DNA from: Bigelowiella natans CCMP2755 | Taxonomy: Eukaryota; Protista; Cercozoa | Direction: 5' to 3' | Length of the DNA stretch: 64,000 nucleotides | Assembly (NCBI GenBank): GCA_000320545.1 | Contig: ADNK01001198.1 | Span: forward strand, 49,695 to 113,694 | Shown: in pieces, positions 9,790 to 59,830 of the stretch | How positions within the stretch are numbered: position 1 is the stretch's first letter | How the letters are laid out: every line of letters starts with the position of its first letter | Notes under the pieces: model-generated | Told to the model about the DNA's origin: nothing | What the model saw: the letters and a program-made list of their open reading frames with translations, nothing else | Database searches by the model: none | Made by a program: the position numbers and the translations under genes

Positions 9790-10900
9790 ACCATGCTAGC
9801 ATGCTAGCATGTACTCTGTACTGGGTGATGATGTGCAGATCGTCTTACGTGCGCTTGCTCTAGTGCTTGCTAGCTTGCGTCTAGCATTTTACCTCCTCCT
9901 AAGACATAAGACTGATCATGGGTAGAAATAGCTTGTAATAGTGGTGCACGGCAACAGCTACCGTCGTAGTATACTAGCATAGCACCTGCTAGCCTGGGCT
10001 GTGTCAAGCATGCTAGCATGCTAGCATGCACACACATTGCACATGCGATGTGGATGAACAGTATATGTGTGCTAGGCTAGTAGGGTGCGTGCGCGCGTCC
10101 TGTCAGTGCGTCGCAACCTCGCGCGTTCTAGCGTTAATTGCGTAATCATGCGGCTAGAGCTACATGCCAGCATAGCTAGATGATGCCCCTAGACAAGACT
10201 AGTAGAGCTGATGCATGCTGCATTGTGCACCATCACAGGTGTCGCATTACGCAGATGTGGCCACGCACACATAAAAAACACATTCTAGCATTGTTGCTTT
10301 ATTGCTTGGCTACGTATATATGTCTAGATATAATGATGGACATGCAATATGATGTGCACACAGCATGTGTACCACATTGCTGTGTCCATCATTGCACCTA
10401 GACACTTGCGCTGTTCTAGTGCTGCTAATAATGAGGCCATGGTGAGTGCGCCATCGTCAAACAGTCCCCATGCGCAGCACAGCTAAACTAGTACGCCACA
10501 CTACTACCGTGATTCCCATGCTAGCATGGTACTGCTACGCTAGTACGGACGTTCGCCGTCTCATATCTGTACATAGTCGTTGCCATGCCGGCTAGCCGGA
10601 CAACGCAGCAATTATAGACATGTAATATCATATATATAATATATATACTATTACTGTGTCTATTATAGCAATTAATGCAATCTGATTTAAATTTGCTGTG
10701 TGCAGTTTGCTAGTTTGGCCCAACGACAGCACATGCAATAGTTAACAAGGACATACACATCATGCTGGATGATACACGTGATAAAGTCTGTCAAAGCTAA
10801 GTAGACGCATATACATGCTACAGCAGGGTGTTCGCCATAGTAATAGTGTATGCATACATGCTGAACGCATGAGATAAAGGATGATGCCCAAATGATGAAG
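9790..10900. other. CTAG/palindrome-rich intergenic island 1 (convergent: ABC and SEN2)
   Basis: About 25 CTAG by eye. CATGCTAGCATG at 9792, 9800, 10009, 10017 and 10517. CCGGCTAGCCGG at 10588. Confidence 0.85.
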
Positions 10901-10950
10901 ATAGCGTACATATCGTTCTTTGCGACTCCTGAGCTCAACGGAATATTACG

Positions 10951-12275
10951 TCACCTTCTTGAAGGGAACCATTTCTCCACAATCAGAGGCGAAATTGTCC
11001 ATTCAATATTCGTATCTGGCCTGTTTGTTAAATTTGTTGCAGAAACCATCGTATCCTCCTTAACCTCCCTTTTATCATCATTATCTTTATTCTCAGCATT
11101 TCGCCTCCTCTCCTTTCTTTTCACACTTGCGGAATCACAACCGGGCATGGAGTGCCTTGAAGCGATAATTGTATGGCATGGAAGTTCCAGCTTTGACGCC
11201 AATGTTTCGGATGGTGATGATGTGAAACAAAGCATCTGAGACAAGTTATGGATCAAAAAAGGAAACACCCGAACTACTACTTTAATTTATGTTGCATACC
11301 AACTTCTTCGCTGCATTTAGGCTGAGTTGAGTCAATCGTTCGAGTGATGCTAAATTCAAAAGAACCATCTATTAACCGTAATTTTCCTGAAATATTGTCG
11401 AATTATCAACCGATATCGAGGAGCTGGAAACTATCTGTATTCTGCGTCTTTCGGGCTTGATCAAAATCCCGACTGTGGATAATTACGCTGTATGCCGCAT
11501 GTACAATCTCTGGAGAACCCTTAGGTGAAACAAACATGGTCAATTCCTCTTTATTTCAGTATTTTTGGGGCACTGCCTCCTCTTTCAAATGTATGTATTA
11601 CTGTGTACAGCAAATAGTCTGCGCCGAATTTCAGTCCTGATTTCACGATCCAACCACGCGATCTATTGAAATGATGATGTCCCAAAAAGAATACAAGAAA
11701 GAATTACATCTATTTTTCCAAACATATTTTTATAGGGTTAAAAAGGCAAAAAGTAAGACCTGAAGTGGTGGTACACTGCATAGCGTTCAGGAAAGCTTGG
11801 TTCGAGTTTGCAGAACAACTTCCATGTATCAGATGGTTTTAGTCGTTGCCTTTTCTTTATCTCCCGTAATTCCCCATTCATATCATTTCCCTTCTCGTCC
11901 AGCTCGCGGTAAATCTCGAGACAGCGAACGAAGCCACTGAGAAAGAAAGCTTCTTCCTAAAAGTTATTGAGAGGCTGAGTAGGATTATCACGATACTGCC
12001 TTCGTTCTCTATTTCGCACCAGAAGTAAGATAAGGACTTCATTTGGAGTTGAGTGCATGGGCTTGCTCTTCGACAGAGATCCCTAAGGTGTGACTTTGTT
12101 AAGTTGGTCCGTGTTACGCTATTACACTTCGGGGTTAGTGAGTCTTTCACACCTTCCCGAAGATTCCATATGCAAACAGTGAATGTAAGTCCCCCTTGTT
12201 GTGAATCTCCACAGCACGCTTTCGGACCACTCCCTGAAAGAGATGCTTCTTCTGCTGTGCGTCGCCGCTAATCAT
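10951..12275 (-). CDS. SEN2: tRNA-splicing endonuclease catalytic subunit SEN2 (start uncertain)
   Basis: Exons GIFGK|GSLSKSKP...|EEAFFLSGFVRCL...YAVYHHFR|SRGWIVKSGLKFGADYLLY|GSPEIVHAAYSV...|LERLTQLSLNAAKKL|...KWFPSRR*. Catalytic Tyr/His/Lys and the SEN2-type C-terminus are present. Confidence 0.9.
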
Positions 12276-12764
12276 TGAGTTCCCTCCTCCTCCTCCTCCT
12301 CCTCCTCCTCCTTTTCCTTCCCCTCCTTTCCTTCCCTCAATAAGCCATGAATAATGGAGGAGAGAAGGAAGGAACAAATTATTTCCCGCCAGTCTGTTGT
12401 CTATTCGGATAAACCGGCTTCTCTGTTTTCGAAAAGCGACAACAGGAGAATATACATTTCGAACCTGCGACAAATGAATTTAGCGAATATTTGCAAGTGC
12501 GACAAGGAATTAGGGAGTGGCGGCAAACCAACCTGGGCAGCAGCAAGAAAGCACATCATCATTCATCAGCCATTTGCTACCAGGTTCTGTTTCTTGAGGA
12601 GGAAGGGTCATCAAGCAAACAAGGTGGTGGTTCATTGTGATGTGCATGCTATATGGGAGAAAGAAGAAGAAGCACTGGATATCATATGTTATTATTACAC
12701 AAATTGAATTCTCGCAAATGAAGAATTTTGTCGACAAATAATACCACGAAGGCACCACCTCTCA
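12276..12764. promoter_or_regulatory. Putative bidirectional promoter region for SEN2 and CDC7
   Basis: Short head-to-head gap with no CTAG island. Assigned from position only. Confidence 0.45.
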
Positions 12765-15219: not shown

Positions 15220-16010
15220 CTTGCTAGCATGGCACGAAGTGTGCGTGGATGCTTGTTTCCACATTGCATGAGAAGCACAATACATGATAGCATCAAGGCC
15301 ATGAATGTACATCGTATCTCGAGCATACTAGCATAGCTAGATAGCTAGATAGCAGTAGCGCCAGCTAGAGTGCATGATGCATTTTCGATCATGTGTGAGA
15401 CGGATATGGCGATCATGTTAAGTAAGACTAGCATTATGTGTGACTAACAAGCTAGCAAGCTATGCTGATCTAGCTAGCTAGCTGTACACGCGCTATCGTA
15501 GCTAAATGGCATTTTAAATAATGCATGCTAGCATGGCATAAGATGCTCGATCGCGTGATTCGATCGTTACCGCGCAGATGCAAGCGATGCCTATTGCGTT
15601 ACTTCATTATACCGCTTACAGCATCGTCAGTGCATGGCTATACCACCGCTAGACTGGCATACTATCCAGTCACACAATGTCACGCAAGCTTCGGGTTCCT
15701 CTCGCGCATAAACGTAACAAGTCGCACCGTATTCTAAAGCAATGTATGTGTACATTAACTAAGCGAGCAACATACCTGCATGTGCATATATAGCATATTT
15801 TGAATATGTTGAGAGGGGGGGAGAGCTAGACTAGAGAGAGGGGGGGAGGGGGGAGATAGCTACGCAGGAGATAGCTACACCGTCAGCGTGCCAGGCACAC
15901 ATAGGGCATGGCTGTCCTTCAGCTACACTGCGGACGACCAATCGCATTAACACTGAGCTAATGCGTATCGTCACGGTGAATACATGTTACTGTTAGTTAC
16001 TTAGTGATCT
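15220..16010. other. CTAG/palindrome-rich intergenic island 2 (convergent: CDC7 and TrpRS)
   Basis: About 14 CTAG, including ctagctagctag at 15470. CATGCTAGCATG at 15524. G-runs at 15814-15853. Confidence 0.8.
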
Positions 16011-16064
16011 CAGTTATAGTTTGGAGTGATCAACGGGGCACCAAATCTTTGTCCTACGATACAG

Positions 16065-18280: not shown

Positions 18281-18569
18281 CACCACGTGGCGTTCGTTGA
18301 TGCTGCAGCCACAGTTCGTGGTGTTGGATCTCACGTCGCCGTTGGCTCTATGAACCAATGAGAAATCGTTGTCGTTCATTTAGAATACATAAGAAACAAA
18401 CAGAAAATAAAACCCAAGGTTGCACACGCGCCTTTTGGGTTGTCGCAGTTGGAAGAACCACCTGCACACAGTTATTCTTATGTAAATACCCGATATCTAT
18501 CCGGGATTCCCGATAAAAACCGGCCTAATTTTGTGAAGGTAATATTCATTCGCACTCCGCTCGCGCATC
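18281..18569. promoter_or_regulatory. Putative bidirectional promoter for TrpRS and EF-Tu
   Basis: Under 300 bp between divergent starts, with no CTAG island. Contains cccgatatctatccgggattcccgataaaaaccgg. Confidence 0.5.
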
Positions 18570-20059: not shown

Positions 20060-20890
20060 CTACTACGCACAGCTTTGCTACGAATGAATACACCTTTATT
20101 TGCATAACAAGGACCAGTGTCAGGGTGTATTATACATAGCTTGTTCACAAGCTACAACTTGTACGACATGTATTTGTATCGTATCGTGCATACTTGCGTA
20201 CATATCATATCAATTGGTGAATTATGCGTGGCGCATAGTAATGAAGATATGCTGCATGAGCGAACGATACGTATATACCATATAATCTAGATATAGCGGT
20301 TGTGCGTGCTAGCGTGGAGTGTGTGCGATATGCGGTGCCGTGTTGTCTAGTTGTACGCGATATTACTTTACTTCGATGCGGTACAGGTGTGCGCTTATTA
20401 GTATATATCTGTAGTACAACCATCGAATCATCGGCTATAGATTATCGTGTCAGTATAGTACGACAGTGTTGGCTGTCGATCGATCACCACAGCTGTGACG
20501 CATGCATATTGCAGCATGCTAGTATGCGCTACGCTATCTAGCTATATATGGCAAGTACGATACAGCAGGCTAGCAGGGGCAGTGTGGTTATCTAGATATG
20601 TACAGTTGTAGCACGCAGTTGTACTGCTGGTAGCATCGCATGTCGATGGCAGAAAAATATATGTACTGTTGCTTTGTGCTAGGCGAGGCACGAGGCAGGT
20701 AGCGCGACTGCCATCTACATACGCTGCTGGGCTATGTATGAGGTGATTACCGACTTTATTAAGGTCAAAGCCACAGCAAGCGAGGCTGTATGTAGTCCAA
20801 CAGCGTATCATGTCGAGCATTAAATAAAACATAAATGCGTACAGCATGCTAGCATGGCCAACAGCCCATCGTGCTAGCTAGGCACTGTAA
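20060..20890. other. CTAG/palindrome-rich intergenic island 3 (convergent: EF-Tu and VPS50)
   Basis: About 11 CTAG plus many GCATGC, TGCA and GTAC. CATGCTAGCATG at 20845. Confidence 0.75.
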
Positions 20891-20938
20891 TTGTGTAATC
20901 GATGGTGCAAAGCTTTCTGTCATAATTTGGCAGTTGAA

Positions 20939-22640
20939 TTATCTGTCCATTACGAATTCGTCGATCTTTGCCTCAACAGCAGCTGTAAACGCCCTTCTGT
21001 TTCTAGCAAATTCCCCTCCCTTAAAAACTGACTCGATTCGTTGAAGAAACTTTTCCCTTCGCTTGGTCCTCATATTTACTCCTGCCCCTAGGAGTGCGAC
21101 GTTGTGATACTGAGAGAATGAATAACCTGGATGCTCTGCAACCCATTTGCATAAATCATCCTCTGGTAGGTAGAATGCCTGTATGTAGTTGTTGTTATTG
21201 TTGTTATTTCAATGGGATGTTGCAAGATGTCTAAGGTACTAATAAATGGCTGATGATTTGGGAGACAACAAGAAGAAGAACAACTCTCTTTTCTCGAATT
21301 AATACATTCAGTAGAAGAGGAGCACTACCTTTACAAAATCATTAGCATATTCCCACAACGGCATAACCTTGAGGTGGTTATTAGGCACTATGCGAGCCAC
21401 TTGGCTACGAAGTACATTAAGATCTAAGGACATCGAAGCTCGTCCTTCCGTTGTACAACGCTTTATGCGTGAATAACCATAAACAAGTACACGCATAATA
21501 TATGCCATTGCTTCTCGATATACAAATCCCTCTATACGGAGAGGTAAGGCCCCATGAGCGCCAACTACTGCTATTGCGTCTCGTATTTCGGAAACCAACG
21601 TGTCTATATACCTAAGAGTAGTAGTAGTAGTAGTAGTAGTAGTATCACGTTAATAATCGTACGACTAAATAAATACAGCGAACATGACGACGAAGTGCCT
21701 TTGAGATGACGAATCTATTAATACATAACATATAAACATATATATATTCTTGTATATAGGTAATTAGTCGTGTGTTAAGATAGGGTATTGCTGTTGCAGC
21801 ATTATTGACGTATAGTTTAGTATCCGTTCATTCTCCATCATCCATCATAATCAATGATGGATAATGAGGATGATGATGACGAAGAAGAAATCTCAAGGAT
21901 TCTTTCCTCCTCCTCTTTCTTCTTCATTTTCTTCTTCTTCTTCTTCTTCACAAACACAGCATGCTGAGGTATCGATCAGCTTACGTATGGTGACGGCTAG
22001 TGAGCTCATTGACATCCCATTTACACGAAGTTATAACCTAATTCAATTATATCTATTGATTGTCTTTCATTCCATTCATCCAGATGAGGAAGGAGTCATC
22101 GTCATCATTACCATCATCATTGTCGTCGTCATCGTCATCATTACCATCATCATTGTCGTCGTCATCGTCATCATTACCATCATCATTGTCGTCGTCATCG
22201 TCATCATTACCATCATCATTGTCGTCGTCATCGTCATCATTACCATCATCATTGTCGTCGTCATCATTTTAATTACCATATATCAGAGCTCTTACTACTG
22301 GTTGCAATGTTAAAATAATAATATTGACCTTGGTGAGAGAAGCTTTTTCCTTAATAAAGAGACTTGAGATGGTTTTGAATGTTCTTATGCGTAGCTCTCT
22401 ACACAGCGCAATGGTGTGTGTTTCGAACAAGTCCACACGTGAGGAGGTATCTGTGGTGGTGGTGGTGGTGATACTGCTGCTTTTGTTGTTATTTCCCATG
22501 GCTGCTGCTATTTGCAACCTCCCTTTCATGGATTGTATGACACGGACAAGAAACACCACACTTTCAGCAGCATTAAGCCTCTCGTTGTAGCCGCGTAAAT
22601 TCATTCTACTCTTCAAGTCAACCTTCAACAGCAGCAGCCA

Positions 22641-28882: not shown

Positions 28883-29378
28883 TCTTTTTGCAGTTATGTC
28901 ACAGCAATGATTGTTTTTACCATGTTATAGACGGGACCATTCACGTCGTTCCTGGTTATGCTTTGTTGGGGAGTCAGTGTCACCGTTAGTTTCTATAGTT
29001 CCGGTAGGATTTTCCGCATGATTATTTATCTAATTCTTAAATCGTTACGGAAATATTCTTTTTAATTGTATTTGTGTATTTAGTGGTATTAAAAGTACCT
29101 TTGGGGTTATTCTATGTTTCAGGGACTACAATCACACGCGCCACACAAAAGAATCGGCCTCGCGCTCTTTCTCTGACACAACAACAACGTTATTCGACAT
29201 TATTTAGCTCAAGTTCAACAAATCATCATGGACCTATTACACCACCAAAGGTAGTAGTAGTACACCATTTTCTTTGGGATTCAAAAAGTGACACGTTCGA
29301 ATTTTCCCCTTAGTTACATATCTTCTTATACTTGTGCACAAATCATCTTCTGCGCTTGATGATGTCTCATAATTCTAG

Positions 29379-31333
29379 ATGTTATACACACCGCCACTGA
29401 AGGGCTCCTACCACAATGATGCGAGCTTGACGAAGAAGTTAGTTTCTTCAATGCCTAAGATAAGTCTCGACAGGGATGATGATGATGATGATGATGTTGG
29501 TGGTAGTGGTGACGATAACGATCACCATGACCATGACGATCAATCCTTCAAAGTGACGGGAACCATGTCCAAGAAGCTATTTGCAGCTGCAGATGCTCTT
29601 GATTCACTGTTTATCCTTCCTCCCACTCCCTCGGTTTCAATTGTGAGGAAGAGGAGCAGATCCAGTTCTGGAACCTCCAAAGCATCACGGGGGGAAGGAG
29701 AAGAGGAAGATGAGAGTAAAATGGGGTTAGAGGAAATAAGAGGAGGAACTCCCAGCACACCCTGCAGGGACGTGATACAGACGAAGAAAAGCCAGAGGAA
29801 AATGAAAAGTAATTTATTGAGAAATAGAGCAAAGAGTAGCTCATCGGCTGGTTCTTGTCGTAAAAAAAAGAGAAGAATGCAACACGAAGCCAACCACACC
29901 CACCTCCAGCACCACCACCACCTCAATAGTAATAAAATCAAGAGAGGCGTGCCTTTGGGACCCGTGATCAATTGGTCTGGACAGCTCTCTGTGTTCTATC
30001 TCTTCGTATGGCATGTACCATTACAAGTCGGAATCAGCTTTGGACCAAGAATCGTTGGGTGCTGTATTATGGCGTTCGTTCTTATCCTTCTGCGTGCTGG
30101 TCGCCATAAAGCCTTATGGCATGAAAGGTGAAGTAATGATGATAATGTAGTGAGATACCACCCTCTCTCAGCCTAGATTAGTACTAAATATCATTCCCAA
30201 TTTCTTGTGACATTCTCGTGGGTGGCTGTTGCCATGGCCGTGTGTGTGATCATCTTCTAATGTGCTATTATCAAAAGGGCGGCGGTCGGTCCATTTGGAT
30301 CAATGAGGCTTTTCCGTCCCCCAATGCCTACATTTCCCATTCGAATCATATTCTCACAGGTGGGTAGGGTAGGGGTAGGTATAGGGAAGGTAGGTAGGGC
30401 GATAGCTAGTGGAGTTACTAGTAGCTTGCAATTTGTGTTTGTTCTTAGGAGGAGGGCTAGATACTCTATAATTTTTTAACATCATCATCATCACATGTAC
30501 TTCTTCTTCTTCTTCTTCTTCTTGAGGTCGTATGGATGAGTAATAGCACACAATAATTATTATATACATAAATTAACAATAGGCCCACCTTCCTAAGCTG
30601 TTCGACCTCCGGTCAGCCATCCTTGCTATCCCAGAGGGTAGAAAGGCTGTCAGGGATGTTGCTGTTGGTGGCTACTGGACAGAGGGAATTACATCAGCTT
30701 TGCTGCCAAGCGGACTCTACAACAACACCCGTGCGTGGGGACTTCATAACGATAAGAGAGACAATAGAATACTAGCGTCAAGTTAATTAGTGTGCAAAGC
30801 TATTGTTCATAGAGAAAGTAGTCTATGCACTTCACTTGTGTATATTGTATACTGTTGGCGTTGAAGTTGTAGCCATAGATGATTGTTCTCGATGATGTTC
30901 AGGTTTGAGGCAATTGGGGCACGTTATTATTAATTTTTTAATCCCAGCATTCTTCATCTTGCAGGTGGTAACATATTATGTACATTGGTAAACTAGTATG
31001 CGATGTATTAAATATGCATAAACAACGTACATATAGTAATAATAATAATGATAAGAATAATATATGCAAAGTGTCAAGTAGGAGAAGGAGAAGGAGGGAG
31101 GAGTGGAATGATGAAAGATGCAGCAGATAATTATTGTTGAGTAGTGGTTTGACTGATATATGATGACATCATACGGAAAAACAGGGCCTAAGCGTACTAG
31201 TACCGTGGGCATGGGGCCATGCAGTCACCCTCTCCGCTCTCCTAGGAAAGGATATTGGGGTAGTAGAAGCTGTATAATATGTATACCCATGTATTAATAC
31301 TTGTTTGCTATCATTATTACCAATCAACATGTG

Positions 31334-33659: not shown

Positions 33660-34490
33660 CAAATGCATGTAGCATGAGTGCTAGAGTGGACATTGATGAT
33701 GGACACAGCAATGAGACACATCTAGACGCATGATGTGTACAAGATACATGACATGTATCACATTGGATGTCTATCATATTGCTAGATTGCATGTGTGTGA
33801 TGTCCTAGTGTGTGTCACGCACGTGTGCGCATTGCTAGATTGCTAGATTGTCCATTGTTGTCTAGTTGTGTTCACGTCATTGCTTGTGTTGGTTGCACGC
33901 AGCACGTGGGCTAGTGGATCATCACTGGATCGCATGACATGCTGGCGTGGGCCTGCTAGCTGCATCTAGGCATGCGTGCTGCGTGCCATGCGTTTGCCAC
34001 GTGGTGCGTATATGCGCACATCGCAACTTCGTCGGCTGTCGAGCACACCTTGCTAGCTTGGCTTGGCACATCTAGACGTGCTCTGGACGTCCAGAGCTAG
34101 AGAGGTGCACACTGCATCAGTATTTCCAGTGGATTTTCACGAGAGTTTCAGGTTGCAGCACTGCTGGACTGGAGCAAAAAGAAGCATTGAACATTGAACA
34201 TTGAACAACAATCGATGAACAATGAACTTGATGATGGACTGCATGCACTTCCAAAGTTTTGTGAGACATCACCACATTGGAACGCGTTGAGCTTTTTAGC
34301 TTTGCATGACGAATGAGTAAAATTATGCGGTCATCGCCATGTGAATGAATGAAGCAGTTCCATGGGAGTGGTTGAGAGGATCGTGGGTCACACTGACTCA
34401 TCCGTGCAATCACCAATTGGCAATCACCAGACTGGAGACGTCCACATTGGACGTCCATCGCGCCTTGGAGCACAGACATCGTACGACACG
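33660..34490. other. CTAG/palindrome-rich intergenic island 4 (tandem +,+)
   Basis: About 13 CTAG in 33680-34100. ATTGCTAGATTG three times. 18-bp palindrome at 34080-34097. TpA-free stretches at 34123-34296 and 34326-34481. Confidence 0.85.
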
Positions 34491-37964: not shown

Positions 37965-37995
<31 letters not shown>

Positions 37996-38152
37996 ATGAT
38001 ATATATTCTATCAGTCGATAAATGATAGTACACTAGCAGCAATTGAAGGGGGGCTGTTGTTTGTTTGGGATTATGACAATTGTGTATGATGATGATGATG
38101 ATGATGACGGATGGACAATGAATTTTATACGTTAATGTAATAAGTGTACAAG

Positions 38153-38210
<58 letters not shown>

Positions 38211-38416
38211 ATATGTATGCGTAAGATCATCATTATCATCATCATCGTCGTCATCATCATTACTTCTCATTTTAACGTATTTCTTTGTTGTTGTTGTTGT
38301 TGTTGTTGTTGTTAATAGTCCATGACACTCGTCGTGAATCGTTTCAACATGATATTACCATTATCTCCCAAGATCATCGATTTGATGGTTAGCATTGCTA
38401 TGAATGGGAATTCGGG

Positions 38417-38454: not shown

Positions 38455-39382
38455 TAGTAGTAGTAAGTAGAACTACACGATTAACTGATGATAATGTACT
38501 GCATGATCATCTACTGATCTATCGATCCTTATTCGAAATGGCTTATAATTCTCAGAAGGAAGTTGCACTCCTGAAAACAAAAGATTGGCATTATCTATTA
38601 TCGTACAAATAGCGTCGAGGTAGTAATGGTAGCACTTGTAGTAGTAGAAGTTGTTGTTGTTGTTGTTGTAGTAGTAGTAGTAGTAGTAGCTGGTGCTGGT
38701 ACTACTACTACTCTTCCATTGGTTATCCTCCATTGATTTGCTACTTACTATTCTTTGTAGAGGTCGTTCAAACATCAAGACATTGCCATCGGTAGGAGCA
38801 AGAGAGTAGTACACCGTTATCTCATCATTATCATCACCTTCATCATCATCATTATCACCTTCATCATCATCATCATCATCATCATCACCTTCATCATCAC
38901 CATCATTACCATCATCGTCATCACTATCGTCATTGTGGTTACTACTTTTTATAAGAGAACTATTAACACAATTCCTCTCTCCCCCTCCTCCTCCTCCTCT
39001 AGAATGAGCAGCAACTGATGTTGTTTGTTGTTGGTTGTTGCTGGTGTATATTCTTTCCTGTTGTCGGATATATATATGACGTACTAAAGATCCAAAAGAG
39101 CGTGATTCCCGCTGCCTTTTCATTCTTGAAGAAAGTGGAGATGGAGGTTGATGAATGGGCTGATCGGTCAGTGGCATTGCATAGCATTGTATCAATCAAT
39201 CAATCAATCAATTAATCAAGCCCTGCTTTAAGAACACACACACACACACACGTTGAACATGATTAAACGAAGATTGATTCCCTTTATCTGCTGCTGCTGC
39301 TATATAAAGAGGCTCTGCTGACTTTGAGGAGGAAGATTTCAGGTGCTGTTTGTTTGTTTGTCTGCTGCTGCTATTATTATCA

Positions 39383-39413
<31 letters not shown>

Positions 39414-40260
39414 AATTATTATCATTATTACCAACAGTACTACTGCTACTACTACTACTACTACTACTAAGACTTGTAGTAATAATAATGCTCTCCTCCT
39501 CCTCCTCCTCCTCCTCCTCCTCCTATTCATCACAAAATAACAATTACTTTTAGAGTTGGGATGGAGACTCTAGATTATCTCTCTTGCTATCTTGGTGCTG
39601 AAACATTCTTCCCTGGTATGCATCATCGTGACTATCATTATCATCATGATTATCATCACTATCATCATCATCGTCATCGTCGTCGTCATCATCATCTTTC
39701 CTGATCCATGTATGATCGCAAGAAGATCTGATGATGATGATGATGACGATGATAACGATGATAATGATGATAATGATGATAGATGATGCTTGATGATGGC
39801 CTCTTCCACATTAAACTATAGCACCTAGTACTCAATCCCCTCTTATCTCTTATCATCATCAGGGCTATGGCGGTTACTTCCAGCTGCCTTCTCCTCCAAG
39901 AACTGGGTTTGCTGTTTTGAGTGTGTTTTGAGTTGTTTGAGCTATTATGCGTGGGTAGTATGATCACCATCATTCTTATCATCTCATCATCATTGTGCAA
40001 CAACAACAACAACAACAAATCAGAGAGAGAGGCATGCTGGATTGATGGGTATATGTGCTGCCTCTGAAGGTGTTAGTACTAGAAGTAGCAGTAGAAGTAG
40101 TAGAAGAAGAATAAACGAATGGATGAATTAACTAATTGGTTAGTATTTCTAACACCACCACAAGCATCATGCTAACATCAAATCCCCATTTCCAGTATTT
40201 GCACATGCTGTTTATGGAAGAAGAAGAACAAATAGTGTCATCTCACGACAATGATACGTG

Positions 40261-48710: not shown

Positions 48711-48746
<36 letters not shown>

Positions 48747-49700
48747 TACGTGAGCGTGTGTGTGTACTGTAATATCCATAGGTTGGGAAGATTGCTATCG
48801 TTATGGGGTGAATAAACACACATCTCACGATGATGATCACGTGTTGATAACTACATTATATACTATTTTTACATGTATCGTCGATGATTTATTGGCTACG
48901 CTTGAGGAGATATCTACCCTCATTATCATCATCATCATCATCATAACCTTTTCTTCTTCTTCTTCTTCTTCTTACTACTACTACTAGTTTGAAAGCAAAG
49001 AAAGAGATTTTGGGCAAATGGGTACTAAGAGTAGAAGTGCATTCATTACGACAATATAAAAAGTACCGACGATTCGGTAGATTGGAAGTTATTGGGTTAT
49101 GAATGTGTGTGTGTGTGTGTGTGTGTGTGTTGTTTCTATGTTAAGATGCTATGTTTCCCTTATATTCAGATTAGTTATTTACCATGCAAGCACGACGTAA
49201 TTGAGGTAGTATTTCTTGTTTGTTCACTACAATCATCATTTTCATCATCATCGTCTTTATTATCATCATCATCATGGTGGTGGTGGTGGTGGTGGTAGTA
49301 CAAAGTGAATCTAGTTGTTGCTATTTAAAAATACTCTGGGCATTACCCAAGAGCCAAATATGATTATATGATCGAATAGACCGTAATCAGTCTCACCCTG
49401 GATGCATTGAGAGAAGAACGTCATTAAAATGCATATTACAGTACACTAAACAACCAAATTCTAATTACAAGAATACTATTAATATAATGATATTCATTAT
49501 TATTTTGTGTGAAGGCCAAGCGGATCCACAGTATGCTCTGCGGATTTCTGGAAAATGGTTGTTATTGTTGTTGTATATTAAATATCATATCATATAAACA
49601 AAGACTGATTAAGCTGTGCATCATCCAGAATCAGACGCAAAGCTCATTTATGGAGCAAATAACAACAATATACCAAAAGTAAGATCTTCACTGATAGTGA

Positions 49701-49732
<32 letters not shown>

Positions 49733-50138
49733 ATGAAGGACTAAGACAACCAAAACGACGATGGTAATGATGGCATTGCTCTAAAATCTCGAGCATAATG
49801 AATACGTTATCTCCTTGTTTTCCTCCATTTCTTCGTGTATTCTGCTTCATCATCATCCTTGTCTCTTTCTTGCTCTTTCTGTCAGCTGATATCCACAATC
49901 GTGGCCATTCTGGGGAATGATCTAGCAGAGGAGGCTGTATTAAAGAAATTCACCAGAATTCTCAAAAATCTCCTTCAAATTATCGTAATGATATCTAGAT
50001 AATTGCCACACAAATCGTGAAGAATGATGGAGGAGGAGGAGGACTATTGTTTGCGTTGTTATTATTTAATTATTCATTCATAATACTACTCACATTATCA
50101 CTATGCCAATGCGCTATTGAAATCACTTATCAAGTCAT

Positions 50139-50177
<39 letters not shown>

Positions 50178-50365
50178 ATTGTTGGGGTCTGGCTCTTAAC
50201 TCTGGCTGGTAAATTGGATATTGCTCTATTATGCTACCACAGGGACCGGATGGCCGTCGACGCATTCATGGTGAGTGTGTGTGGTAGCAGTAGTAGTAGT
50301 GTTCCAAGGAATAAGACATTATCAAGATAATTATAATATTCTCTCTCTTTCTTTTTCTCACCACA

Positions 50366-50433
<68 letters not shown>

Positions 50434-50546
50434 TCTAGACATGTGCATTATACACAAATACATATCTGTGTGCACATATCGAATCGTTAGGCATGCTAAA
50501 TGACAGCAAGCACCGGGCCATAATTCAAAGGGTATGGGAATCCTAG
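34758..50546 (+). CDS. IPO5: Importin-5/RanBP5 (karyopherin beta-3, Kap121-like); dozens of micro-exons
   Basis: ME|AWKEFEGVCIGTQ|DPDNPTRIAAE, RMFCCVMLRQ, DGWPDLIPFI, DPHARVR|WAALNTVAHLCAEFSP, KMICPLIEFKHSPRVR, DVRHSAVYC|IGMCA, AADNAISS|VGKI, LPCKHDVIE. Importin-4 is the less likely alternative. Confidence 0.85.
47043..47166. repeat. 12-bp minisatellite, about 10 copies, intronic
   Basis: Unit gtattattgttg. Confidence 0.85.
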
Positions 50547-50639
50547 GAGTAGAGGAACGTGTATCTTGGGTGAAACTATACAGTCAATCATAGAATATTG
50601 CCATGCAATAGCAATATCTAACACGGTAGATATATCACC

Positions 50640-51480
50640 AAGCAAATGATATCTTACACTGCATGTCTAGATCTAGAGATGTCTAGCTACCTAGATGTAC
50701 CGCACACACCGCACTAAAATATATCGATGCGACAGTAGAAATGGAGGGCGAGCGAAAGTAGTAGTGCAAAGTGTTATAACTCACCCGTTTACCTGTCTAG
50801 CTGTGCATGTATAATGATGTCTATCTAGATGTATGTGTGTGCGCACTGCGCCTAGCTAGCTAGCTAGCTAGGCGCAGCGTTTGATTGCTTCATTATAGTC
50901 ATCATTATTGATCTCTAGATCTATAGCTAGCGCGCGCTGGAATGCCACGCCTAATAGACGTCTAGCTAGCTAGATAAATGCTCTAGTGCTGCGTATAGCA
51001 GTATCAATAACAAATGAGCAATGACACCAATTAGCAAGCTAGCAAGCATCGCATCCGTCCGAGCAGCAATAATGTCTAGATGTATTAAGTGTCGTGTCGC
51101 TATTAGCTATCTAGCTAAGCTAGTAAGCTAGCAAGCTGGCTATCTAGCTATTTATGAGCCACAGCTGATCTAGATGAGATGAAGAGATTTCAGATGATAA
51201 CGATACACATGCTATAGCTAGCTAGTCTAGCTAGTGCCAATAGATCTAGAGGTGCAATGCTAGCTTACTAGCTAGCACGTCGTGGCACAGATGCCATAGT
51301 CTCAAACATCGATCTGCACTATGTCTAGTATGTAGCACTAGCTAGCTCTACACTTACGGTGCCCCGGTTTCCACTACTAGACTACAGACTAGCTAGCTGC
51401 TGGTCAATTCTAGAATAATTACGCACGAAGCTATAGCCACCCCACAGCTACGACTGTTACGTACATTTATGCGTCATGCG
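50640..51480. other. CTAG/palindrome-rich intergenic island 5 (convergent: IPO5 and UBE2S)
   Basis: About 35-40 CTAG in about 750 bp, the densest island. Confidence 0.9.
50846..50877. repeat. Perfect 32-bp palindrome
   Basis: CTGCGC(CTAG)5GCGCAG equals its own reverse complement. Confidence 0.95.
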
Positions 51481-51668
51481 TATCAAAATACGTTTGAATT
51501 ATAGAGTTACTAATAACTACGAATTTTTCCGCTGAGTTGTAATCTCTATACGCAGAGTCAGAACACTGTCCATTACATCTACATTTAAGCAAATGTGCTT
51601 TGTTTGGATTGTGTCATTTCCACGAGATTCGATATGGACAATGTGCTTAATACGCTGCAGGTTTGCAA

Positions 51669-52697
51669 TCACAATCTTTTCAGACTAGAACCTTTTTGCC
51701 TTCTCTTACTTTTGGATTTAGAACTTTTTGAAACCTTACTGCTCTTGGACTTTGCAGAGGTGGCCTTCGATTTACTACTTTTGGATGATGCTTTCAAGCA
51801 ACTGCTTTCTTTGGACTCTTTGCTCTCATTGCTACCTTTTGGAGTTGCATATAGCTTTGTAAACATCAATGCTCGCTTGGAGTAGCTATCATACTCTTCC
51901 AGGAGTAACTTTCCTGCTTCCTCGTTAAGAGCCGATTCAGGGTTAGGATGGATCAGCAAGCACCTGATAACCTGATAGAAGAAGAAAGGTAATTTAAATT
52001 TCAGCCATGAACATGGATAGATTCCATGGGCACTTTGATTTCTGTCTTACCATAAGTACATGTTTTAAGCCGTGCGCTGGTTTCCAGTCTTTCTTAAGCG
52101 TGTTAACGCAGATCTCCCCCTTGCTAGAGACGTTCGGATGGAAGATTTTGGTGAGGAAAAATCCTAGGTAGCACAAATCCCAAAGTTGTCGTTAGGTACA
52201 ACTCTAATTTCTGAACACATATCACATGAATAGTAGCATTTCAAAAGTAATATACCTTTTGGGGGCGAATTTGGGAAGTCGCTTCCGATTCGAAGCATGC
52301 ATCGGAAAACACCTCCTTGAAAAGGTGTACCCTCTAATAATACAGAAATCAAATTCATACCATTTCAAAAACATATTTTGCATCAATCTTTAGGGATCAT
52401 CGTGGTAAGAAACGTCAACCTGGCCCCTCGATGTCTGCGTTAATGCAAGTCATGTTCTCTTCCGAAAAGTGGAGCACAATGCCTTCTGGGGTATTTTTGG
52501 TCACATCTCGGATGTCTTTCATCAGCTTCATCATAGCTTGAGGAGATAGGTTCTCATTCTATCATAATTGATACCATCAGTTACACTAGTATCGACATTG
52601 GGTTATATTTCTCTCTCTCCCTAAATGTTTAGCATTCGATGCCTCTTCTTCATACCAGCCTCAACAATACTAGCTTTTTTTTAGGAATCTTTTTCAT
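51669..52697 (-). CDS. UBE2S: Ubiquitin-conjugating enzyme E2 S (first exon uncertain)
   Basis: [16 protein letters not shown]...IEGP|[10 protein letters not shown]...FPNSPPK|[27 protein letters not shown]...|[27 protein letters not shown], with a basic tail ending LKRL*. Confidence 0.93.
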
Positions 52698-53159
52698 TTT
52701 TCGAAACGCATGATCATGATTGAACAAGGCGTGCTCATCGACGTGCAGGGTCACCATGGTTGATAGTTTGTCCTCCTTGGTTCTTCGTTGCACGGCTCGT
52801 TCGTCTCTGGGTCCTCCTAGACCTATTCTTCTTCTTATTACGGTTGCGTTTCAAGCGATCTCCAGTGAGTCTCTCAGAGTCTCTAGGGATCTCACTCTCC
52901 GCCAATCCAACGGATATCAACCTTTTATTTCAAAAATTGATGTCGTTTTGAACCAGAAACTTCATTTTTACGATAGTTCTGATAGAAATTGCCCCGGCGT
53001 AAAAAATGCAAAAAAAAGTCGGATGCCCGTTGAAGCTGGATTATGTTAGGCCGAATGCACAATCAACACATCGAAAGCAGCACACACATGCGTTTTTGTC
53101 TCAAAATGCTTCTAAATCCATTGTCGTACCGGTACACTCTTCGCTCATTACGATTCTAC

Positions 53160-54115
53160 GACATGGTTTTCGTGTTCGACCTGCAGGGAAATTTCGGGAG
53201 TTCGTGGTGTTCTTGGGTTGCACTCTTTCCTTTCTTTTTTTCTTCATCAGTGTGCTCTCTAGCTCTGCTATTCTGCGGTGAAGGTCCTCTTCTGCCATGC
53301 ATGCACAAACACTTCTTTCTTTCTTTCATTTTGAACCTTGTCTGTGATGTGGATGTCATCAAGAAGAATGTGGATGAGAGAGCATGCCCAATGCCAGAAT
53401 GATCCTTTCAGCTGGCTAGCTGGGCCACTCTGGCATTGCATGCACGGAATCACTCCACGTTCTCTTTCTAGCTTTCCCCCGCTTTTGTTGGTCAGCTGTT
53501 TTCAAAATCTCGCTTTTATCCTGGCTAGTTCTAGTTGCATCTTTGTGTTTGAGGCACGTCTTCACGTCAACAGCGCAGCGCGAAGTCTGTGCATCGTTCG
53601 TTCGATCAGTTCGTTGCTCCGTCGACACGACCGCTAGCTAGCTAGCTAGCTAGATCGCTCCACGTCTGGACGTCTAGCTAGCTGGATCGCAGCATGCCAA
53701 CATGAGCGTGCGTGTGTCGCAACGAGCTGCGCGCCACCGTTGCACTTGTGCTCTCTTGAGATCGAACTGAGTGCCAGCTGTGCTAGCAGACACCTAGAAA
53801 TCTAGAGATGTGCATGTGCATGCTCTAGTGCTAGCTAGCTAGCATGACGCAGCAATCTAGCAATGCTAGAATGATGATGGCAACGTGCAGCATGCGCTGT
53901 GCATCGCATGTCCATGCTAGCTAGCTAGCTAGCTAGCTAGGGCCACAGCTAGACAGGTAATTGTAGCAATTATGAACTTGCATGGTAGCATGTTCTGGCA
54001 ACGTACAAGCTAATGCACACTAGCACACATGCTAGTTCTTATTGTTGCACTTCTAGGCTTCTAGACTCATAGTAGAGAATAAGGTCGATATCAAGAAGCA
54101 ATGCGGGAGTTGCTA
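53160..54115. other. CTAG/palindrome-rich intergenic island 6 (tandem -,-; after the SAM50 3' end)
   Basis: 28 CTAG in 53161-53955. (CTAG)5 at 53634 and (CTAG)6 at 53917. Only 2 TpA lie outside CTAG. Confidence 0.9.
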
Positions 54116-54191
54116 GACGAATGCGTCCGCAATTCAACAACTATGCATCGAAACATTCATACACAAATCGATTACATGGCCGTATCGTTCA

Positions 54192-54439
54192 TCATGAAAA
54201 GTCACTATCCAGAGCCCATCGAAATCGGATTTCAGGTAGAAAGTCTAACAGAAAAAATGAATGAGGGAATTTGAGCTAGTGAACAAAAACAATGCATTTG
54301 GTTAACCTCCTTGATGATGCGTCGTCACGGGTGCTACTAGATTAATCTCGAACCTCCCAATAGATATCGGAGCAATCACTCCTACTCCCACCTGCAGCAC
54401 CATAACTACCAATCAGAAAGACGGATAGAAAGCGAGGGG

Positions 54440-54478
<39 letters not shown>

Positions 54479-57385
54479 TAAATGCCAAAACACAATTGTG
54501 TTGAGAAACCGAGGCTTTGACTTCATCTTTGCTGGTCAACTTTGCCACGCGACTCAGAACATCTCCGTCTCCTAATCATTATCCCAGCAGGAACAAAATG
54601 GATAATAATACACTTCGCAATTGTAGTATATCAACCAGGTAACATACATACCGTCTGAGAGAAGCTGCATGTTCCCTGCATTTGCAAATGCATGCAAACG
54701 GATGTTATTGTCCTTAAAAATCTGAATAGGAGGGGAATAGGCGATGCTGCCACCAACGGTGTAGTAGCCATCTCCCCCAATTGCGTCCCCTGTGTTATTC
54801 CAAAAACAAAATATTGATTGTTGATGATCTACATATTATTATTATCCGAGAAATGATAGGATGGAAGCTAATAGTTTGACCCTTGATGGAAGAGAAATGA
54901 TATAACACTATCTTGTCGAAGTACAACTACTCTTATCCGCTTGAGTTGAAGGAAAGAGGGTAAAGGAGGAGGAAGAGAAGGAGGAGGAAGAAGTGAGATC
55001 AACCATCACCTTCGTCTTTTGGTCCAAACTCTGTGAAACCGCGGATTCGAAGGTCACTGATGTATTAAGCAGGGAATATGCAAAGTGAGAGGTTGAAAGT
55101 TCTCAACTCCTCGCTGCTTGCAGACATATATACATATATACTTACAGACATACATACATTATCATCATATTTGGTACGATCGTACGACGATTAGAGGGGT
55201 GGGTGTCGTTAAAACAATCCACAGATCAATTGTATATAGTGAAGAAGGAAGGAAGGAAGGAAGGAAAGATCTATTAATCGATGCACAGATATGGGGCAAT
55301 CTACGGTTGTGTAGGGTGTTTGTGCTCTTACCGAAATCCACGATGGAAGAAACGATCATTGAGGAGTGAGGGAGTCTGATATGTGATAATGTATCTTCAA
55401 ATTGTACATGCGTGTGTAACGAGTATTATGCTTATCATCGAAGTAATATTTACTACACCAAAACAGAAATGAACATGTATTCGTTCCCATTCTTATTTTC
55501 GCAGGTAATTTCATAAGTAAGGGCAGTGATTAGTATTTAACCAACCCCGAAGAAATTGAGTCCCTCTCCCAATGGAACCTAATTTAGCACATATCAGGAG
55601 GAACAAAGATGATGGCGGTGGTTATTTTTCTGCTGCTTCTGTGAGATTTTCATCAAACAATTGCTCCTATTATACATATATTTACACATACATACATACA
55701 TACATGTGTGTGTGTGTGAGTATGTGTGTGTGTGTGTGAGTATGTGTGTGTGTGTGTGTGTGAGTATGTGTGTGTGCGCGTACCAGCAGCCCCCCGAAGC
55801 AACCAATAGATGCCGTAACGCTACTTGAGATCGGCCAGTGTACACGTCCGCATCCTTCGAGCTTGCCAAATCTCACATCACCACCGAATCCCGCAATTTC
55901 CTTTATGGAGTGCATAAATAAATGAATGAGTAGGATCTTCTCTCCTCCTTTGGTGATGATGGCTGTGATTGATATTATTCGCAGATACTTACCGTTGAGC
56001 TCTTCACAAAAATTCCCTTCGTTGGAACCTAAATGTCAGAAGAAAAGGCGTATTTAAGAACCAATCCATCAGTGCCTTTGTTCGTCGTTGGTAGTGATGC
56101 TGCTATTCATGACTAGTTTCTTCTTCCATTTACTACCAATTTGTGATCGGTAGTCTCATGCGTATACGTGTATCGTATCGACGATTTCAGTGATGGCATC
56201 GAGGCCTTCAACACGCTGCCGAGTACCGAACAAAATAACAAGAAACACCACAACACAATCATCAAATATTGTTCCTATTAGATTGCTCAGCAGATCGGAA
56301 GATAAAAGCGGCGTGACGCTGCTGCTACCTGTTAGAGTGAGGTGTATCTGCGGGTTTTTCATGAGGAACCTGGAGTGATGAAAGTAAGCGAAACGAATTG
56401 AATGCGACGATGAAAAAGATAACGATGAGGATGATGATGGTGACGATGATGGCGATCCATCTTTTGGGACTGACCGAGATGATGATGTAAATAATTTGCT
56501 TTTTTGCAATTAGTTCCGAAACACCACCACCACCACCAACCGATATGATAGTAGATAGTAGATTGGGTATCACCATCATCATCATCATCATCATCATGGG
56601 AATTATGATATAATGGGATATAATTCTTCATTGGCAGCAGTCCCTTGATTCCATCAGCAGTAGCAGCACCAGGACAATTGTTGGTATTATTATTATTAGT
56701 AGTAGTAATAGAAGTAGCAATAGCGGTACCACATCCCTCCAAGCACCGAGATACTCAATCTAATTATGATATCCAACAAGTAAACGATAAATCTTGCTCT
56801 AATTTCTCGGCAAAACAAGCACTGCTATCTGAGCAACCTGTTGTCATTTTATATACTATTATACGAACAAAATCTTTGGTTCATGGCTGCTGTTGTGTCA
56901 CTCATGCTGACCTAGTTGTCTATATTACTAGTATGATAATTACATTGTGCTTCTGATCTTCGCTCTTCCCGTTGATTGTCAGTCCTGAGGACTTTTCAAC
57001 AAACCTAATTGCATCCATTATGATTCAAGAAATGAGCAAAACTTACGAACCAGTATCACTACTATCTGTCTATCTATTTCGGCGCCGTATTGCTCTACCC
57101 GGAGTCTCTAAAGAGAGTTCCCCCATTGTAGTGCGCCATAGCAGCAAAGGTGCCTATCAAAAGGGAGGAACGAGGAGGAGGAGGCGACCACGGTACGACT
57201 CAATAATCATTACAAAACACAGAAACAAATTTGAGCTATTTCCTGCTTTTGTAATCAGTCCGTAACTTAGGAAGAGAAAGGGGGAAAGGGTTGCAGACTG
57301 TTTTACCAAATGGTGGCTGAGAATCGTTCAACTTGAAAGCCTAAGTCGTTACATAGGAGGAGGCAGCATCGTCAATTATCATCAC

Positions 57386-57419
<34 letters not shown>

Positions 57420-58660
57420 GCCCTCGGCACAAACTTAATCGGACAGGAATCAGTACCTTAGGTTTCGAGAGAGTGAGAGCAAATGATCTGCGGGACAAAA
57501 CCAAGGGATAATAACACATTTGTTGCAAGATATGTACATGATTCATGTAGTGCATGGTGCGTGATGATAAATATAACTATTCCATGTTCATCAGCTTAGC
57601 AACCACCCTGCTGTCTGATCGTTTCCATACGAGAAGGAACCCTTGAGGGACTCAGCATTGCCAAAGAGATTGCGGTACAAGCCTTTTGTGGAAAACGTGA
57701 AGAGTGAGCATTTTGACAAAATCTTATCACTAATCTTACGTGTACACGCACATCTAATCCATGTAGTGTATATTTGAATATTGTTATGAATACGTCAATT
57801 CGTGTACCAATTTCAACACGGTTGCTCACTACAGAAGCATACAAAGTGATTCACAGGTATAGAGGAGTGTACGTACCTTCGATTTTCATCATTGGCTGCC
57901 GTTGGACGGTTGACATTCCTGTGAGCAAATCAACACATGAGAAGATATCTACACCAAAACAAATGATGAGAAGAGAAAGGGAGAGGAGGAGCATCCGGAA
58001 GAAAGTTACTGGGGGATAAGGCTGATATACCTACTCCCGCGCTTCCGTAGAAAGAGCCCTTCTCCTTCAGCTTAACTATCAGGTCTAGTGGAATGGGAGG
58101 ACAATGGATGAATACTTTGAGGAGGAGAACTCATTATTAGTTGTTGGCCATTAAATTGCGATGTTTTTCTCAGAAACTAACAACCCAGGACGCGGGGCTT
58201 GGTCGTCTCTTTGAGTTGGTAGTCGACAGTTTTGTACATCCCCAACTCCTCCATAGCCTGTGCGTCCATCAAAAGACGATCATCGTAAATTAGAGAATAA
58301 CACCAACAATATCATCTCGAATCAAGCACAGAAACTATTTTTTAAAGTCCTGACATGTGTGCCTTCTTGAATGGCCTGTAAGAGCTGGCCAAACGTCGTC
58401 GAGGATTTTGCTTTGACAAACACGTCATTGACGAAGGACTTCGATGTGCGGAGCTTCGGGTTTTTGCTATCTTCTGCCGGCGCAACCTGGATCTTTTCCA
58501 CGTTTATCGGTACATTCTAAGAAGCAAAAGACATTGAAAATTCGGTTCCTAGTTTGTGGTCGATTTATTGTCAACTTGGTGTAATCTTCCATTGAGTAGA
58601 TTGATCTGATATGATCTGCTTGTTTGTACTTACGTCGAATCGGGTCGCTGGTGCTGCCAT
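54192..58660 (-). CDS. SAM50: SAM50/Tob55 (Omp85 family) mitochondrial outer-membrane beta-barrel insertase
   Basis: MAAPATRFD|NVPINVEKIQV...LRTSKSFV (POTRA), GLYRNLFGNAESLKGSFSYG, FALTLSKP, YLGAWRDV, DRFFHRGFR|DLRIRGFTEFGP, GDAIGGDGYY, RLHAFANAGN, VGVGVIAPISIGRFEINL. Some internal junctions are unresolved. Confidence 0.9.
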
Positions 58661-59032
58661 AGCTCCTCCTCGTGGCCACCTTGTGGGAGGTACATCAAAG
58701 GTAGTACTGCAATCATCACAATCATCGAAATATGCTGGACAAAGTTGCTAAGGTTGGTACGGAGAGATCTAAGGTTGTACATGAGAAGGAGTGACTTACC
58801 TCTCTCCTTGTGCTTCTTACTGGATCTAGATTGCTACAAGCGCTGTGCGAGGGGATGTGGCCTGGGCAGAGCAGCTCGGCACACTCAATTTCCAAGTTCG
58901 TTCTTCAGTAAAAGTGTTGTTGTTGTTGTTGTCGCGATGCATAAACGCCGGATGATTTAGACATTTATGGTGTGTTTTCATGTCGCACATCCTGTGTCCG
59001 AGGGGATTTATCGGTAGCTACAATGCCGCGTA

Positions 59033-59830
59033 ACCCATCGGTCCATCGGTTGACACACGGATCAAATCATGGACCCATTGATGCAGGATGATGAGAAGCA
59101 TCAGAGAAGTTTTCAACCATGAAACAGCAAAAACTTCAAGAAATCTCTTTGAAGAGACCTGGATCACAGGACAAACAACCTCTGTTTTTTCCCATGACGT
59201 CAAAGACGCGACACCTCTCTGATTTTGTCACTCATCCACACTGGCACAATCTGTGCAAATCTTGCCCACGCTTCTCACGAATTCGTTGCACGCTGGCAAT
59301 GCTAGAATGACGTGCAGATGGACCGCACCGCTGTCGCCCTTGAACGTGATCCCAGAAACCATGCTGGAATCTAGCAGGAATGGCACCTCTGCATGCATGC
59401 ATCTTGCAGAAATTGCGCGCTGCATCCATGCAGTGCGATGCGCAGTCTAGCAGTGCTGGCTAGCGTGGCCGCCGGCTAGCCGGGTGCCGCAGTGCCGCCG
59501 GGCGCCGCCGGGCTAGCGGGTGCCGCCTGAGCCGTGTCATTCAGCATCGCATCTGCCATCTTCGATCCAGGATCGACATTTTTCATGGATGCATAATGCA
59601 TGTGCATTGGCGACAATGTGGACGCTGCTAACCTGTCTAGCTGTGGATCAGCATCTGCTTCATTGCACTAGCCTGCGACAGTCACCATTTGAAGAACATT
59701 GTTGATTGCATGCGCGAACAGCCCAATCTAGCAATGCTAGCCACATGATGGATGGCTGCGACTGCTGCCTAGAAGTAGCCGCCAAGGCGCCATGCTAGCA
59801 TGCTACGTGCGATGCTCAAACATGAGCGTG
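59033..59830. other. CTAG/palindrome-rich intergenic island 7 (tandem -,-)
   Basis: 12 CTAG against 4 other TpA. No TpA in 59033-59302. GC-rich core at 59466-59527. CATGCTAGCATG at 59791. Confidence 0.85.

Follow-up and report, generated by a model that had tools for sequence, protein, structure and literature searches.

CTAG islands behind genes of Bigelowiella natans probably reflect stereotyped 8-bp insertion scars

We analyzed a stretch of 64,000 bases (hereafter the window; contig ADNK01001198.1) from the 91.4-Mb nuclear assembly of Bigelowiella natans, which comprises 3,736 contigs, and characterized seven islands where the tetranucleotide CTAG is densely clustered. These islands are probably collections of stereotyped 8-bp insertion scars, located in mostly untranscribed spacers behind genes, and the likeliest source of the scars is a transposon with a 4-bp target duplication. 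In each scar, four bases of variable sequence (X4) are present as a direct repeat on the two sides of a constant CTAG, giving the form X4-CTAG-X4. A first, sequence-only reading of the window had taken the same islands for a candidate gene-boundary mark written in a shared grammar of palindromic words. We found no published description of CTAG islands or scars in full-text literature searches.

The window contains 250-251 CTAG, for 235 predicted by base composition, and their distribution is strongly clustered. Indeed, 146 of 250 are found in the seven islands, which together span 6,159 bases (9.6% of the 64,000). The resulting density is 23.7 CTAG per kb within islands and 1.8 per kb outside them (around 13-fold), when base composition predicts 3.7 per kb. 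From island 1 to island 7, the counts are 25, 14, 11, 13, 39, 32, and 12, and the coding sequence of EF-Tu has 2. Besides CTAG, the words GCTA, AGCT, GCGC, CGCG, CATG, ATGC, GCAC, TGCA, and GCATGC are enriched in islands, and homopurine words (e.g., AGGA and GGAA) are rarer. Tandem Repeats Finder reported no di- or trinucleotide array within any island and more than 100 of them elsewhere in the window. All this matches the description given in the sequence-only reading: islands with about 11 to 40 CTAG where chance would give 3-4 per kb, 2 CTAG in the EF-Tu coding sequence, a richness in CATG, GCATGC, and TGCA, and a lack of trinucleotide microsatellites.

The structure of the scars became apparent when we compared the two halves of the 12-mers centred on CTAG, in which the left four bases equal the right four. 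Among 322 island CTAG, identical flanks were counted 125 times for a length (k) of four bases, 7 times for k=3, and twice for k=5. An order-3 Markov model expects 2.5% of CTAG to have identical flanks, and CATG or TGCA cores give 1-2%. When tandem occurrences were set aside, 95 of the remaining 222 CTAG had flanks matching at all four positions and 40 at three of four, whereas control offsets gave at most 1% and at most 3%, respectively. The commonest run of matching flanks is made of exactly four bases abutting the CTAG; the next commonest is longer by one or two bases, at about the level of chance. An analysis of exact 4-nt direct repeats gave the same picture, since a filler length of 4 was the only one enriched (99 vs 44 simulated), and the filler was CTAG in 42 cases, CTGG in 5, and CCAG in 3. 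A direct duplication of fixed length, exactly 4 bp, as in transposon excision footprints, lies on both sides of a constant filler, whose variants CTGG and CCAG are attributable to TpA mutation. Perfect scars include 69 of the 147 island CTAG in the window, vs 1 of the 104 found elsewhere. Many are not palindromic, e.g., ATTG-CTAG-ATTG or TGCT-CTAG-TGCT. A scar is a palindrome only if the duplicated 4-mer is itself one, and most CTAG are therefore not part of a palindromic code. The grammar of palindromic words proposed in the sequence-only reading is not supported on this point: most CTAG represent an invariant filler that was inserted together with a 4-bp direct duplication, for a total of 8 bp.

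The scars are very abundant in the genome. The 12-mer CATGCTAGCATG, which is the scar with X4 = CATG, the commonest target, has 3828 sites genome-wide, vs 7 for the reversed control (about 550-fold), and its two-unit form, the 20-mer CATGCTAGCATGCTAGCATG, has 147. The flanks of 27 sites are mutually unrelated. A metagenome scan for the 20-mer CATGCTAGCATGCTAGCATG returned 22 unrelated contigs, none with an island-like density of CTAG. To sample the genome independently of the window, we used 200 kb of other contigs (264 kb with the window). Perfect scars number 165 in these 264 kb, which extrapolates to around 57,000 genome-wide.

To reconstruct the sequences in which the insertions took place, we removed the insertion from 190 isolated scars and built a logo of the target. 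Its position 0 is C in 54% of the cases (A 29%, T 16%, G 2%) and its position 3 is G in 51% (T 33%, A 15%, C 2%). The target is thus weakly symmetric, C-N-N-G, as a dimeric enzyme with a 4-bp stagger would give. Since both parts of a new insertion, CTAG and the second X4, suit the enzyme's target preference, one expects arrays ending in X4, (CTAG)n runs of odd length, and a clustering where the rich get richer. Mini-arrays do terminate in X4, i.e., at 2.5 units, as expected under repeated insertion. Examples are the repeated scarring of one target at 9792..9811 (CATG-CTAG-CATG-CTAG-CATG, 2.5 units of period 8) and a non-palindromic array at 33831..33850 (ATTG-CTAG-ATTG-CTAG-ATTG). A perfect palindrome of 32 bp on (CTAG)5, at 50846..50877, is consistent with CTAG serving as its own target 4-mer. 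In the 264 kb, the (CTAG)n runs with n from 2 to 6 number 19, 14, 0, 4, and 1. Runs with n = 4 do occur in the genome-wide listing, which implies that processes other than scarring also act. The arrays are a minor part of the islands: exact tandem duplications cover around 5% of island bases and most scars are isolated.

The position of the islands relative to genes is best resolved at 49500-55499 of the window, where we mapped one raw RNA-seq run and three runs of transcript contigs. Gene A, on the plus strand with GT..AG introns and a last exon starting at 50490, has its 3' end (poly(A) site) at 50786..50794, where the transcript contigs of three runs stop. Gene B, on the minus strand with CT..AC introns and a 5' end near 53069, has its main poly(A) site at 51493, as shown by reads whose loose end is poly(T), and longer transcript forms that reach around 51200. 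The transcript contigs of gene C, also on the minus strand, end at 54044..54057. RNA depth at 50900-51099 is zero in all four runs. Because these gene ends are mapped with RNA, island 5 (50640..51480; 39 CTAG, 13 perfect scars) can be described as a spacer that separates two convergent poly(A) sites, and island 6 (53160..54115; 32-33 CTAG, 16 perfect scars), between tandem genes, as the interval bounded by the gene C poly(A) site and the gene B promoter. When the three mapped 3' ends are taken together, 12 CTAG are found over the 600 nt preceding each end and 60 over the 400 nt following it, i.e., the density climbs from 6.7 to 50 per kb across the poly(A) site. Most CTAG lie outside mature mRNA. 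We also observed a weak plus-strand transcript, from 53235 to around 53650, that leaves the promoter of gene B (minus strand) into island 6 and resembles a divergent promoter transcript.

The other islands were placed using predicted exons. Islands 1 (9790..10900; 25 CTAG, of which 14 are in perfect scars and 5 have flanks matching at three of four positions) and 2 (15220..16010; 14 CTAG, 6 perfect scars) are between predicted convergent genes, those around island 2 being a kinase gene on the plus strand and a next gene on the minus strand. Island 3 (20060..20890; 11 CTAG, 5 perfect scars) is 3' of EF-Tu (plus strand), with its first CTAG 446 nt beyond the stop codon, and faces a minus-strand gene. 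Island 4 (33660..34490; 13 CTAG, 8 perfect scars) follows a plus-strand gene ending near 33439. Island 7 (59033..59830; 12 CTAG, 7 perfect scars) is in a tandem arrangement, 190 nt past the stop codon of a minus-strand gene ending at 59985. The head-to-head gaps at 12276..12764 and, upstream of EF-Tu, at 18281..18569 have no CTAG, and the one at 28900..29380 has one.

To assess whether this arrangement holds beyond the window, exons were predicted in the 264 kb with a self-trained 3-periodic Markov model (trained on long open reading frames), the gaps between adjacent predicted exons were classified by orientation, and an island was called in a gap if it had a cluster of at least 6 CTAG per 400 bp. 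An exon predictor using codon usage alone was too weak and was replaced by this model, and the splice-site consensus was too degenerate to be used as a strand marker. On these predicted exons, and with the window included, CTAG clusters are present in 12 of 17 convergent gaps vs 1 of 18 divergent ones (Fisher p = 8e-5). If the window is left out, 8 of 13 convergent gaps have a cluster, vs 1 of 14 divergent ones. The sole divergent gap with a cluster is an interval of 9 kb that may hide genes. The density of scars per kb follows the same order: it is highest in convergent gaps (1.55), lower in same-strand intervals (0.56) and divergent gaps (0.25), and lowest in predicted exons (0.09). Among eleven additional loci of 3 kb centred on long (GCTA)n arrays, three were convergent, two tandem, and none clearly divergent. 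The orientation rule is therefore a strong tendency rather than a property of every gap.

The positional part of the sequence-only reading fares well in this analysis, with some corrections. Islands do come after the 3' ends of genes, with islands 5 and 6 just downstream of the three poly(A) sites mapped by RNA, and divergent promoter gaps lack them. The bias towards 3' ends had been extended to every gap, whereas 5 of the 13 predicted convergent gaps on other contigs lack a strong island. The head-to-head gaps had been described as free of islands, which agrees with their 0, 0, and 1 CTAG. The proposed arrangement of four convergent and three tandem islands agrees with RNA for island 5 (convergent) and island 6 (tandem), and with predicted exons for islands 1-3 (convergent) and 7 (tandem); for island 4, only the left-hand plus-strand gene could be placed. 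Separately, the region 37400-38400 of the window is a possible convergent gap with only 1-2 CTAG, located between weak plus-strand open reading frames (34.3-37.4 kb) and strong acidic ones on the minus strand (38476-39522). If these gene models hold, it is a 3' gap without an island.

Once formed, the scars decay. A 2026 preprint reports, for B. natans, a hypermutation of TpA to TpG/CpA that is directed at foreign DNA, and genes that are TpA-depleted and rich in CpA/TpG (bioRxiv 10.64898/2026.01.13.699255). Once CTAG is set aside, TpA falls to 0.09-0.24 of its expectation in islands 4, 6, and 7 (0.23 in island 6) and in several zones of the other contigs, and CA+TG are in excess; the TpA-poor part of island 4 is its right half, and the left 270 bp of island 7 have no TpA at all. 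Scars with a decayed filler (CTGG or CCAG) number 16 in eight TpA-poor islands vs 1 in nine TpA-normal ones. The persistence of TpA solely within CTAG in TpA-free zones had suggested that CTAG is shielded from TpA mutation, but this is ruled out, because decayed fillers are common precisely where TpA is poor. It also means that the CTAG surviving in TpA-poor islands are probably younger insertions. More generally, the decay of the fillers by the genome's own TpA mutation argues against the conservation or protection of CTAG. The changes seen in the fillers and in the CA/TG-rich zones overlapping islands 4, 6, and 7 are those of the published hypermutation (bioRxiv 10.64898/2026.01.13.699255). 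This process removes TpA and cannot create CTAG. It accounts for how scars erode, and perhaps for part of the richness in CATG and TGCA, but not for the origin of the islands. A hand tally of the published mutation list showed TAG contexts to be somewhat under-used.

The TpA-poor zones are 0.2-3.5 kb long, with CA+TG at 1.4-2.1 times the expectation, which is the signature of the published hypermutation, and some of them overlap predicted exons. In the window they are at 53158-53963, 59020-59628, and 33773-34296, and on other contigs at C254 37816-41361 (L004-L005) and at C273 17100-18619, 21022-22460, and 61808-63302 (L012-L013, L017). A Pfam search of their open reading frames had a weak match to an integrase core as the only hit of note. 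Across the zones in the 264 kb, CTAA persists at 3.2 per kb and its complement TTAG at 0.6 per kb, i.e., the difference is strand-specific.

From the location, structure, target logo, and decay products of the scars, we infer an enzyme and a reason for the bias towards 3' ends. The islands would be mostly untranscribed spacers that start at or just before poly(A) sites, and their excess of CTAG would come mainly from one recurrent mutation, X4 to X4-CTAG-X4, which adds 8 bp. The enzyme would make a 4-bp staggered cut in a weakly symmetric target resembling C-N-N-G, and fill-in of the ends would leave the same four bases (CTAG) between the two copies every time. Such a footprint most likely stems from a cut-and-paste transposon that duplicates 4 bp of its target site; on excision after an earlier insertion, it would leave behind the last two bases of either end (CT and AG). 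A scar would in turn supply fresh favoured targets (the CTAG and the second X4), and further scarring would then produce the clusters, the odd (CTAG)n runs, and the mini-arrays of period 8. The accumulation of scars behind genes may reflect either a tolerance of these regions to insertion or an attraction of the enzyme to the chromatin of gene ends, and TpA-to-TpG/CpA mutation would later erode them. The excision footprints of Tc1/mariner-type elements, with a TA duplication and 2-3 terminal bases from each end, similarly have a target duplication of fixed length around a short constant remnant, and the footprints of cut-and-paste transposons also have a weakly symmetric target consensus and gather in non-essential DNA. 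Unlike the Tc1/mariner type, B. natans has a duplication that is 4 bp long and variable in sequence, around an invariable CTAG, and the footprint is unusually uniform. Unlike transposon footprints in general, the scars would be present in an extrapolated 57,000 perfect copies, mostly behind genes.

Several results weigh against a transposon as the source, or against scars as a full account of the islands. No parent element was found when 297 kb were searched for terminal inverted repeat elements of the form X4-CT..AG-X4 with 12-bp inverted ends, which returned only artefacts of CTAG arrays, and the few interspersed repeats that were detected do not fit as a parent. The footprint is uniform, whereas transposon footprints usually vary. 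A CTAG+4 insertion is absent from the 21 de novo indels of mutation-accumulation lines (around 3,100 generations), which is weak evidence: a rough estimate, based on a mean scar age of around 5% divergence as judged by how often flanks match at 3/4 rather than 4/4 positions, predicts only about one event. Perfect scars make up only 8% of island bases (128 were collapsed). After this collapse, CTAG is still at 16.5 per kb, CATG at 14.8 (vs 4.6 in the background), TGCA at 14.5 (vs 5.6), and GCGC at 6.0 (vs 1.4), so that CTAG, CATG, TGCA, GCATGC, and GCGC stay 2.6- to 8-fold enriched. This residual enrichment may come in part from older scars and from TpA mutation of TA-rich DNA. Finally, gene orientation outside 49.5-55.5 kb depends on a crude, self-trained exon predictor. 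In the list of de novo mutations, 7 of the 13 insertions end in ACA (including +GACA, +CAACA, and +CATTACA), and the list also has a multi-base change of TGGC>AACA (Table S2, bioRxiv 10.64898/2026.01.13.699255); these may reflect a second stereotyped insertion process.

One might also regard the clusters of short palindromes (GCTAGC, CATGCTAGCATG, GCATGC) as a selected terminator or insulator, bound by dimeric proteins or symmetrically modified, that halts read-through in both directions, or, in a variant, the scars as raw material that was later put to use. We consider this unlikely. It would account for islands that begin at poly(A) sites, for transcripts from both sides that die out within island 5, for an orientation rule that holds on other contigs, and for a palindrome-rich composition that persists after the collapse of scars, but transcripts of gene B that read through its main poly(A) site extend across several clusters of CTAG, and around one third of the predicted convergent gaps have no strong island. 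Most CTAG are in direct-repeat scars, many of them non-palindromic, and the fillers decay like any unprotected, unconstrained TpA. As a lead only, GCTAGC is a documented site of an apicomplexan (Toxoplasma) AP2 factor, and AP2-domain genes are present in the genome. The spacing of CTAG shows no 10-bp (nucleosome-like) phasing, the only period being 4. Long hairpins or cruciforms were considered and rejected: islands have few long inverted repeats each, mostly CTAG arrays, and fold as RNA only slightly better than shuffled sequences (mean z of -0.64 vs -0.14 in the background).

As regards a modified base, the genome has C5 DNA methyltransferase genes (five matches). The families PF12851 (Tet_JBP) and PF05063 (MT-A70) had no match, in a genome search that is weak and does not prove absence, since it works exon by exon and its control genomes lack both families. 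The base J of kinetoplastid termination regions is comparable in that it marks where RNA polymerase II transcription ends, including at convergent junctions. It differs in being a base modification that JBP enzymes introduce and that has no defining word, whereas the islands of B. natans are a sequence scar in a genome with no Tet/JBP match. The islands may have a role in termination, insulation, or modification, but none is needed to explain the sequence. One of the methyltransferase genes deserves mention: C1391:110667-111599 (+) encodes a complete C5 DNA methyltransferase domain (E = 2e-76), within an intronless open frame of 649 amino acids. The lack of introns is unusual in this intron-rich genome and may indicate a viral or bacterial origin.

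It is quite unlikely that the scars come from host break-and-repair tied to transcription termination, in which torsional stress behind and between converging genes would lead an enzyme with a 4-bp stagger, e.g., one resembling topoisomerase II, to cut, and the fill-in of staggered ends would give the 4-bp duplication. The weakly symmetric target and the stagger do suit a dimeric enzyme, scars concentrate at 3' ends and in convergent gaps, and the parent transposon was not found in the 297 kb. Moreover, 17 of the 21 indels in the mutation-accumulation lines are intergenic (bioRxiv 10.64898/2026.01.13.699255). The difficulty is the constant CTAG, for which this process has no source: fill-in yields X4X4 and not X4-CTAG-X4, and plain X4X4 is not enriched apart from CTAG phases (56 vs 49 simulated for a filler length of 0). 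Trapped topoisomerase II is reported to produce 2-4 bp duplications in yeast and human tumours. These also result from a 4-bp staggered cleavage that is filled in, by an enzyme active near transcribed 3' ends, but they have no filler, whereas B. natans has the constant CTAG between the copies.

It is very improbable that the islands are ordinary low-complexity DNA, i.e., (CTAG)n and octamer microsatellites grown by replication slippage in unconstrained spacers: short arrays of period 4 and 8 do exist above the Markov expectation, and (CTAG)4 has 1159 genome sites vs 22 for the reversed control, but exact tandem duplications are a small fraction of the islands, most scars have a single CTAG, whose flanks are identical over exactly 4 bp and show no periodicity beyond that, arrays rarely exceed 6 units (only 19 such sites genome-wide), and the di- and trinucleotide arrays typical of introns are absent, so that the exact 4+4+4 structure largely refutes slippage.

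The islands are not copies of one element either, as the sequence-only reading had already concluded from their failure to align end to end. We found no end-to-end alignment among 17 islands, which BLASTN, run among them and against the sampled DNA, links by low-complexity matches of 24-59 bp only, and island 5 has no second copy in the 91-Mb genome, its sole match being itself. With no shared termini either, a single transposon family was ruled out. Two families of interspersed repeats of around 100 bp (about 90% identical), with no obvious inverted ends or target duplication, were seen at island edges or in 3' gaps. The first is listed at C255 L020:8980-9088 and L026:1915-2019, and the second at L029:1099-1200, L009 (C254 87610-88140), and L016 (C273 59497-59578).

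If the islands are indeed accumulated insertion scars, a single enzyme wrote tens of thousands of identical 8-bp marks, almost all behind genes, which would make the genome an exceptionally clear register of the places that a DNA-cutting activity reaches. What looks like a motif grammar could then arise by mutation alone, and an enrichment beside gene ends need not be a regulatory code. The decay of flanks and fillers would provide a built-in clock for TpA-directed hypermutation, and the scars would offer concrete targets for finding a new type of transposon, or a termination-linked break process, in the poorly studied Rhizaria. There is a small chance that the scars, rather than being relics of an extinct selfish element, come from an enzyme of the host, or a domesticated one, that cuts repeatedly with a 4-bp stagger at termination zones, or that clusters of scars were co-opted as orientation-independent terminators or insulators; either would amount to a new sequence-writing mechanism that marks the gene boundaries of B. 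natans.

Two other repeats were observed in the window. A proline-rich open reading frame made of 48-bp repeats, at 8956-9585 on the plus strand, stands directly before island 1, and a coding-type repeat of 33 bp is present in 5.6 copies, with 97% matches, at 22095-22279.

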